Under the pieces are notes generated by a model. It worked only from the letters and a program-made list of their open reading frames with translations. It made no database searches and had not been told where the DNA came from. The translations under genes and the position numbers were made by a program. A stretch of DNA of 63,792 nt, counting the filler, from Reticulomyxa filosa (lineage: Eukaryota > Protista > Foraminifera), in assembly GCA_000512085.1 (NCBI GenBank). It is 22 parts of 22 records of this genome, joined end to end, with 100 filler letters (N's around TTAATTAATTAA, not from the genome) between each part and the next. Parts side by side here need not be neighbours in the genome. Positions count along the whole stretch, not along the records: positions 22,119 to 24,992 come from ASPP01025697.1; 21 more parts are not named here. One strand, given 5' to 3'. Below are positions 23,888 through 24,522 of the stretch, piece by piece; the stretch's first letter is position 1, and every line of letters begins with the position of its first letter.

Positions 23888-24522
23888 CACAGGACCTTAA
23901 CTTTTGTCTCTTTATATATATTAAATTCATTTCCCCCATTATATATATAAAAGAGACGGGAAGTCAGGTCCCAGGCCAATTTCAAACACTAATCCTTAAC
24001 TTCTTTCTTATTCACATTCGTAATCATTTTCAAAACACTATTGCCCGATAGGTCCTTAGAATAAGGACTCAGGTTATAAAGGTTTTGGGTCCTGAGTTTC
24101 CGTCTCTAAATTTCGATAAGGATCCAGGTTAATAAATTACCATGGGAGGAATTTTTATTATATAGTAAGAGACACAAAGTAAGGACTCGCGAACCGTGGA
24201 CCCCGCACTCCGCCCCTATGGAACCCGGGTCCTTAAAAGCCGTCTCTTACTATATAATAAAAATTCCTCCCATGGTAATTTATTAACCTGGATCCTTATC
24301 GAAATTTAGAGACGGAAACTCAGGACCCAAAACCTTTATGACCTGAGTCCTTATTCTAAGGACCTACCGATCCATGAGTATTTTGAATAAGAAAGGTACA
24401 GTTATATTTTAAAGGATTGGTAATGTATATTAACCTGGGACCTGACTTCCCGTCTCTTTTATATATATGATGCAGGGAATGAAGTTAATATATATTAAAG
24501 AGACGAAAACAAAGGTCCTGTG
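23888..24522. repeat. ~630-bp nested palindrome with eight iterated 20-bp motifs (candidate replication origin or recombination site)
   Basis: Arms 24049-24173 and 24242-24366 are reverse complements with 1 mismatch in 125 bp; 23941-23975 and 24434-24468 match perfectly over 35 bp; the outer ends also pair. Function is inferred only. Confidence 0.95.

Follow-up and report, generated by a model that had tools for sequence, protein, structure and literature searches.

What are eight copies of one two-part 20-mer, RRGWCCT-N8-GTCTC, set in four convergent pairs, doing in the middle of the 1.08-kb spacer upstream of a RING-finger gene? The question is raised by a nuclear contig of the foraminiferan Reticulomyxa filosa, which makes up one piece (positions 22119-24992) of the window, the stretch of 63,792 nucleotides, joined from parts of this genome, that was analysed. 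The original prediction took the array for phased binding sites of a sequence-specific protein, such as an origin-binding initiator, flanking elements at which DNA is unwound. Foraminiferan genomes are barely assembled, and no described cis-acting DNA element for Foraminifera was found in the literature searched (the Merlin and Replitron papers name R. filosa only in passing); here is a concrete test case, in which a bipartite motif of 20 bp with conserved half-sites sits in a self-homogenising nested palindrome. Two frames border the spacer:

22302 to 23665, minus strand: RING-finger gene; exon 1 at 23491-23665, a GT..AG intron of 57 nt at 23434-23490, exon 2 from 23433
24743 to 24937, plus strand: 64-codon ORF, divergent to the RING-finger gene, 220 nt from the palindrome

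A palindrome of palindromes

A pattern search returns exactly eight zero-mismatch matches to RRGWCCT-N8-GTCTC, on the strands and at the positions that the original prediction had given, against 0.10 expected from shuffles of the piece, and elsewhere in the piece (22119-24992) there is none further, even with one mismatch allowed. The within-pair spacers of 42, 62, 62 and 43 bp, the TATATATA runs in the outer spacers and the mini-palindromes GTCCTTA-N3-TAAGGAC at 24052-24068 and 24347-24363 were also found as predicted. The 8-nt gap, described as fixed in length and variable in sequence, does vary, but within limits: its sequences form two classes, one resembling TAACTTTT and the other GACTTCCC, and two of its positions, an A at 2 and a T at 5, are almost constant. 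The half-sites lie 13 bp apart, centre to centre, and TATA-like runs follow six of the eight sites. What had been called an eight-copy lattice turns out to be an overcount of a nested palindrome of four homologous units, laid out as follows:

23888 to 24522, no strand: whole nested quasi-palindrome, 635 bp, from CACAGGACC to GGTCCTGTG; symmetry centre at 24207/24208
23891 to 23972, plus strand: unit A, 82 bp; alpha 20-mer at 23891-23910 (+), 42-bp AT-rich spacer with TATATATA runs, beta 20-mer at 23953-23972 (-)
23976 to 24045, no strand: arm-specific segment x, with a sliding identity of 0.55-0.57 to its mirror y; conserved between the two loci compared below
24052 to 24068, no strand: mini-palindrome GTCCTTA-GAA-TAAGGAC, two GWCCTTA half-sites without GTCTC; fold z = -3.3
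24087 to 24188, minus strand: unit B, 102 bp, homologous to the reversed unit A; beta 20-mer at 24087-24106 (+), 62-bp spacer, alpha 20-mer at 24169-24188 (-)
24189 to 24226, no strand: non-palindromic GC-rich centre, 38 bp, 71% GC, reading GGGGCGGAG on the minus strand; identical in both loci
24227 to 24328, plus strand: unit B', mirror of B; alpha 20-mer at 24227-24246 (+), 62-bp spacer, beta 20-mer at 24309-24328 (-)
24347 to 24363, no strand: mirror copy of the mini-palindrome
24370 to 24436, no strand: arm-specific segment y, mirror of x
24437 to 24519, minus strand: unit A', mirror of A; beta 20-mer at 24437-24456 (+), 43-bp spacer, alpha 20-mer at 24500-24519 (-)

The stretch from 23888 to 24522 is a palindrome of palindromes: four homologous units of 82-102 bp (A, B, B' and A'), in alternating orientation and each bounded by inverted 20-mers, are disposed round a 38-bp asymmetric centre. 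Repeat finding and arm-versus-arm alignment give arms that are 80% alike overall, with 100% identity over about 125 bp; the inner arms match over 144 nt at 94% (about 125 nt of it at 100%) and the outer arms at 84-85%, and a stretch of about 65 bp in each arm has a mirror identity of only about 55%. Folded as a single strand, the whole forms one long hairpin (-240 kcal/mol, z = -40), with terminal inverted repeats of 27 nt at 85%. The palindrome ends sharply at CACAGG...CCTGTG, since no inverted similarity was found in the flanks beyond these ends (score 23, against 20.4 +/- 2.5 in shuffles), which also rules out a palindrome that continues into the flanking leaders or genes.

Since the stretch is one imperfect palindrome, the eight 20-mers amount to four, mirrored, and these four reduce to two subtypes, alpha (about RGGWCCTTAACTTTTGTCTC) and beta (about GGGWCCTGASTTYCCGTCTC), which run alpha-beta-beta-alpha in one arm and alpha-beta-beta-alpha in the other. 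Unit A aligns with the reversed unit B at a score of 70, against 40.5 in the same orientation and 6.7 +/- 7 in shuffles; unit A folds into a hairpin of its own (z = -4.85), unit B has no independent fold (z = -0.6), and unit A' is covered by a repeat, I2, of 87 nt at 84% and contains another, I3, with 31-nt arms. The alternation of homologous units and the alpha/beta order together indicate that the eight sites descend from two, or ultimately from one, ancestral end sequence. A tRNA- or SINE-derived centre was considered and rejected, as ARAGORN finds none. A 9-mer, CCTGAGTCC, adjoins the mini-palindromes and the beta sites and also occurs outside the palindrome, at 23842-23850, where it is not conserved in the second locus.

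The second locus and the age of the element

Is the structure real, and how old is it? Contig ASPP01039877.1 of R. filosa (3,034 bp), which encodes the hypothetical protein ETO00846.1, is collinear with the piece in reverse orientation and carries a palindrome of its own at 463-1098, with eight exact motif matches spaced 63/128/82/58/82/134/63 bp; spacings and arm asymmetries are the same as in the window. An assembly or chimera artefact is ruled out, because the second contig, at 10% divergence, has the same structure down to the asymmetries of its arms.

The two loci have diverged very unevenly. Over 422 codons, the RING genes have a pS of 0.62, which is saturated, a dS of about 1.35, a dN of 0.16 and an omega of 0.12; judged by these codon comparisons, they are old paralogues under purifying selection. 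Their introns and 3' flanks can barely be aligned. The 1.2-kb upstream block (23757-24992) is 89-100% identical between loci and has a fairly abrupt boundary near 23757; within it, 10.9% of sites differ from 23757 to 24742 (10.5% in the palindrome versus 11.6% in the non-palindromic upstream flanks), and the side that holds the 64-codon ORF is 99.6-100% identical. Because the flanks are conserved as much as the palindrome and the adjacent ORF is identical, most of this conservation is better explained by recent conversion between the loci, or by a younger duplicated block, than by selection on all of it.

An alignment of all four arms separates what the loci inherited from what they acquired. 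Forty-eight variable columns, mostly among columns 100-169, are specific to one arm and common to both loci, which dates the palindrome, asymmetries included, to before the loci split. In 17 columns the arms agree within a locus and the loci differ, and 22 columns have single changes; in the inner core, 11 concordant both-arm columns stand against two single changes. The concordant, locus-specific columns indicate that the arms have been homogenised within each locus since the split, that is, by concerted evolution, and the both-arm changes come in clusters of three or four neighbouring bases, for which conversion or template switching is a better fit than stepwise compensation. The most variable segment between the loci is the middle part of the spacer of unit A, and the sequence of the mini-palindrome is without change in all four arms (two arms at each of two loci).

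Conserved half-sites and the readings weighed

If conversion can explain most of the identity between the loci, what is left for selection? Across the two loci, none of the 16 copies has a change in its GWCCT or GTCTC half-site (0 of 80 positions), against 7 of 64 gap positions (p = 0.003) and 58 of 477 other positions, a background of about 11-12% (p = 1e-4). The sparing persists with the hypervariable spacer of unit A removed (p = 0.002), and with the arms merged or by resampling (p = 0.012 each); with two loci to compare, the conservative forms of the test give p of about 0.01. Base composition is not the cause, because in the background it is G and C that change more often than A and T. 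Units whose spacers can scarcely be aligned any longer still have identical half-sites (spacer p = 0.03). Differences between the loci are over-dispersed (variance/mean 1.83 versus 0.88 in permutations), and the longest run of identity spans the centre:

24166 to 24249, no strand: longest run identical between loci, 84 bp (alignment columns 502-585), comprising the two innermost alpha 20-mers and the centre; permutation p = 0.005

The sparing of the half-sites together with the asymmetric centre argues for sequence-specific recognition. A functional, probably protein-bound motif, as originally proposed, thereby gains support from the unchanged half-sites of the paralogous locus; the eight sites, given their common descent, are not independent of one another.

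How, then, could such a structure have been built and kept? What is well supported is a genuine, old element that arose by inverted duplications of a small unit with inverted repeats at its ends and that owes its symmetry to arm-to-arm conversion. Short inverted repeats drive palindromic duplication by snap-back (PMC7999016), and two rounds of such foldback inverted duplication, seeded by the short inverted repeat of the unit itself, could have produced the nested arrangement; a small insertion, foldback- or MITE-like, may have served as the first unit. Symmetry would be kept up by arm-to-arm gene conversion or by quasi-palindrome template switching; such switching is described as extending arm identity (PMC3820800), and gene conversion as keeping palindrome arms alike (PMC8981503). 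The asymmetric centre would limit hairpin-driven breakage, much as longer spacers stabilise palindromes and lower their hairpin-driven fragility (PMC7999016). The locus would thus be a small-scale example of snap-back duplication and arm conversion building and maintaining palindromes. The half-sites with their adjacent TATA-like runs and the GC-rich centre are predicted sites of a sequence-specific protein, two-subsite or dimeric, and the palindrome is a putative shared upstream regulatory module for the divergently oriented frames on either side; a regulatory module is preferred because of the central position, 222 and 220 nt from the two start codons, and the TATA-like runs at six of the eight sites. 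Taken whole, a conserved-site palindrome made by inverted duplication and arm conversion and serving as a protein-binding, shared upstream regulatory module is the reading favoured here, if tentatively and with more doubt than confidence.

In its main rival, the palindrome would be what remains of a non-autonomous DNA transposon, foldback or MITE in type, or else four clustered copies of one small MITE, and the 20-mers would be transposase-binding terminal or subterminal repeats with no host function. The palindrome is probably one of these two, a regulatory element bound by a protein or a derivative of a transposon. Such a relic is rather unlikely as the whole explanation; a host that now makes use of the element may nonetheless owe its first unit to one. 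It would suit the sharp CACAGG...CCTGTG ends, the AT-rich and non-coding sequence, the four homologous short units, each with inverted ends of 20-22 bp, and a spacer that without the palindrome would measure about 440 bp, near the median intergenic distance of R. filosa (426 bp, in an assembly of which 30.5% is repeats; PMC13746701); long terminal inverted repeats with multiple transposase sites are known from Galileo/Foldback elements and MULEs (PMC3688188, PMC3310237), and weak Rfam similarity, to MITE-like hairpin precursors only, points the same way. Against it, no target-site duplication exceeds what random intervals give at any level: the whole palindrome has a 2-bp AA only, the units show 0-4 bp, against mostly 2-4 bp for random intervals, units drawn instead as divergent pairs have none beyond random expectation, the longest flank matches are 5-6 bp and lie in low-complexity sequence, and the second locus lacks the CCGAT pair, 5 bp long, that flanks the inner palindrome here (p about 0.1). 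Of the scenario that the original prediction had named as its refutation, a short MITE inserted four times with target-site duplications, the part that stands is that the sites are inverted ends of four homologous units; the duplications are absent. Four independent insertions, moreover, would not give a symmetric alpha-beta-beta-alpha, alpha-beta-beta-alpha order, and a dead insertion should decay evenly, whereas half-sites and centre are spared. Exact scans of four conserved 20-24-mers through viral, metagenome and prokaryote collections, to which the R. filosa genome does not belong, gave 0 matches, and the only related locus found is the paralogue with the same flanks; should the element prove to be a common mobile family genome-wide, it would be a matter for routine repeat annotation. 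Could the whole be a neutral by-product instead, a palindrome made and homogenised by repair, with recent inter-locus conversion and chance behind its conservation? That 1.2 kb of 89-100% identity lies beside genes with saturated synonymous sites, that the flanks are as conserved as the palindrome, and that two loci give a conservative p of about 0.01 are what such a reading would expect; it is distinctly unlikely, given half-sites with 0 of 80 positions changed against a background in which G/C mutates most, their identity among units with near-unalignable spacers (p = 0.03) and the 84-bp identical centre (p = 0.005).

A strong hairpin might also be conserved as RNA, and a locus whose transcribed stem is processed to small RNAs, with pairing under selection, would account for a near-perfect inner stem (144 nt at 94%, 125 nt at 100%), a fold z-score of -40, the 11 paired against two unpaired changes in the inner core and the weak Rfam similarity to long plant miRNA precursors (MIR812, 36.1 bits, E = 0.015). 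This is quite improbable: MIR812, the best Rfam match, falls far short of its gathering threshold of 80 bits and all other families score lower, so that a known RNA family was rejected; in each arm, a 65-bp segment pairs at neither locus and yet keeps its sequence; the clustered both-arm changes fit conversion better than stepwise compensation; and conservation is highest in the centre, which is unpaired, and in the gaps of the innermost sites, which are not complementary, a pattern that points to conservation of sequence, not of pairing. The original reading, a sequence-specific replication origin or amplification element in which initiator sites sit in inverted pairs round AT-rich unwinding elements, as in oriS, is highly improbable. 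It would have selection maintain the site lattice as a chromosomal origin or amplification element of a multinucleate foraminiferan, with GWCCT-N8-GTCTC as initiator sites, a proposal just as improbable. The inverted bipartite sites do flank AT-rich spacers of 42-62 bp, the pair spacings of 62-63 and 82 bp correspond to about 6 and 7.8 helical turns (10.5 bp per turn), and the sites are conserved between loci. The layout is generic, however: inverted sites round AT-rich spacers are an automatic by-product of a nested palindrome, and the oriS analogy is drawn from that layout alone, neither an initiator gene nor a viral context having been found beside it. What surrounds the palindrome is cellular: its neighbours are a nuclear RING gene, spliced at a spliceosomal intron, and an orphan ORF, with no initiator or helicase gene in a Pfam search; and the centre of symmetry, at 71% GC, would not unwind easily. 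Outside budding yeasts, few cellular origins are defined by their sequence, which also counts against an origin. Neither the 20-mer nor the RING protein has relatives in viral contigs, and a viral origin of the locus was rejected on these missing matches and on a PF05290 match below its cut-off.

Several known systems share parts of this design. Foldback-type transposons and MITEs (Drosophila FB, Galileo, and MULEs with multiple long terminal inverted repeats) likewise have sharp ends, a short centre without repeats and long inverted arms in which a short protein-binding motif recurs, and are non-coding and intergenic; unlike them, the R. filosa palindrome has no target-site duplication, its motif copies alternate instead of standing in tandem, neither a transposase nor, in the collections scanned, further copies were found, and its half-sites and centre stayed unchanged after the locus was duplicated, which is unexpected of a dead insertion. 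The yeast GAL1-GAL10 UAS serves a divergent gene pair through four CGG-N11-CCG Gal4 sites; it resembles the palindrome in having a two-part motif, fixed in spacing and looser in its gap, that recurs several times midway between divergent starts, whereas here duplication has set the sites within a large palindrome, the second "gene" amounts to a 64-codon ORF that lacks support, and the regulatory role is putative. The palindromes of mammalian sex chromosomes, and quasi-palindrome correction by template switching in yeast, also yield arms that share derived, locus-specific states round an asymmetric central spacer, and there too conversion stops where the arms are too diverged; their arms, however, span kilobases to megabases, against 0.3 kb here, where the arms hold no genes and are nested. 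In viral origins (box I-AT-box II of HSV oriS, the SV40 GAGGC pentamers, the baculovirus hr palindromes) inverted motif copies flank AT-rich spacers with dyad symmetry, as they do here, but the palindrome differs in its cellular context, spliced neighbour gene, GC-rich centre and lack of an initiator gene, and the AT spacer of oriS is short, its 42-62-bp counterparts much longer.

The flanking frames and the contig ends

A shared regulatory module presupposes something to regulate on both sides. The RING-finger gene, whose start codon lies 222 nt from the palindrome, is real, as shown by its omega of 0.12 and its homologue ETO00846.1. Its product matches RING Pfam families and, with the exons queried separately, exon 2 has its one strong match in ETO00846.1, a hypothetical RING protein of R. 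filosa (74% identity, E = 1e-104). A word-indexed protein search with exon 2 alone gave no relative, ETO00846.1 as a protein query returned only itself, and other RING protein matches came from unrelated organisms, and two Logan contigs with distant RING proteins do not carry the motif. On the other side, the 64-codon ORF has no Pfam domain and no homologue in a protein search, and for that reason it is a predicted frame only and a divergent gene pair is unproven.

The frame of the RING gene changes by 1 nt near 22790 and then runs on in a C-terminal frame to the stop at 22302. The change (22785-22795, minus strand) falls at a run of five T, where the ORF of the second locus is continuous; the C-terminal 160 codons beyond it are open and conserved. 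Such a frame shift points to one of two causes, a sequencing error in the homopolymer or a gene that has very recently become a pseudogene. The model of ETO00846.1 has a 41-nt intron and includes MFFFLLFVVCCLLCIG, apparently a translated intron (1478-1566 of the second contig); a GT..AG intron of 89 nt would match the position of the 57-nt intron in the window. A weak match to PF05290, a baculovirus immediate-early RING family (17 bits, against a cut-off of 33; 22790-23431, minus strand), spans residues 68-158 of exon 2, a coiled segment and the RING, and is taken as generic RING similarity.

Both ends of the piece seem to lie close to repeats. Positions 24743-24992 and 1-250 of the second contig stop at the same base, with the last 224 bases identical and a single mismatch in the next 26; this shared end suggests a collapsed or multicopy repeat that halted the assembler. 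The 3' flank of the RING gene (22119-22200; 2790-2950 of the second contig) has short repeats of the TACAGAAA type, and an element of the CGGGCTCATGACT type occurs twice in the second contig and once at the very start of the piece, so that this contig end, too, lies in repeated sequence. T/G-rich, (GTTT)n-like low-complexity leaders precede both start codons (23666-23750 and 24690-24742), and a similar tract follows the RING stop (22281-22300); the second locus has them likewise, and untranslated regions in the R. filosa genome may commonly carry such tracts.
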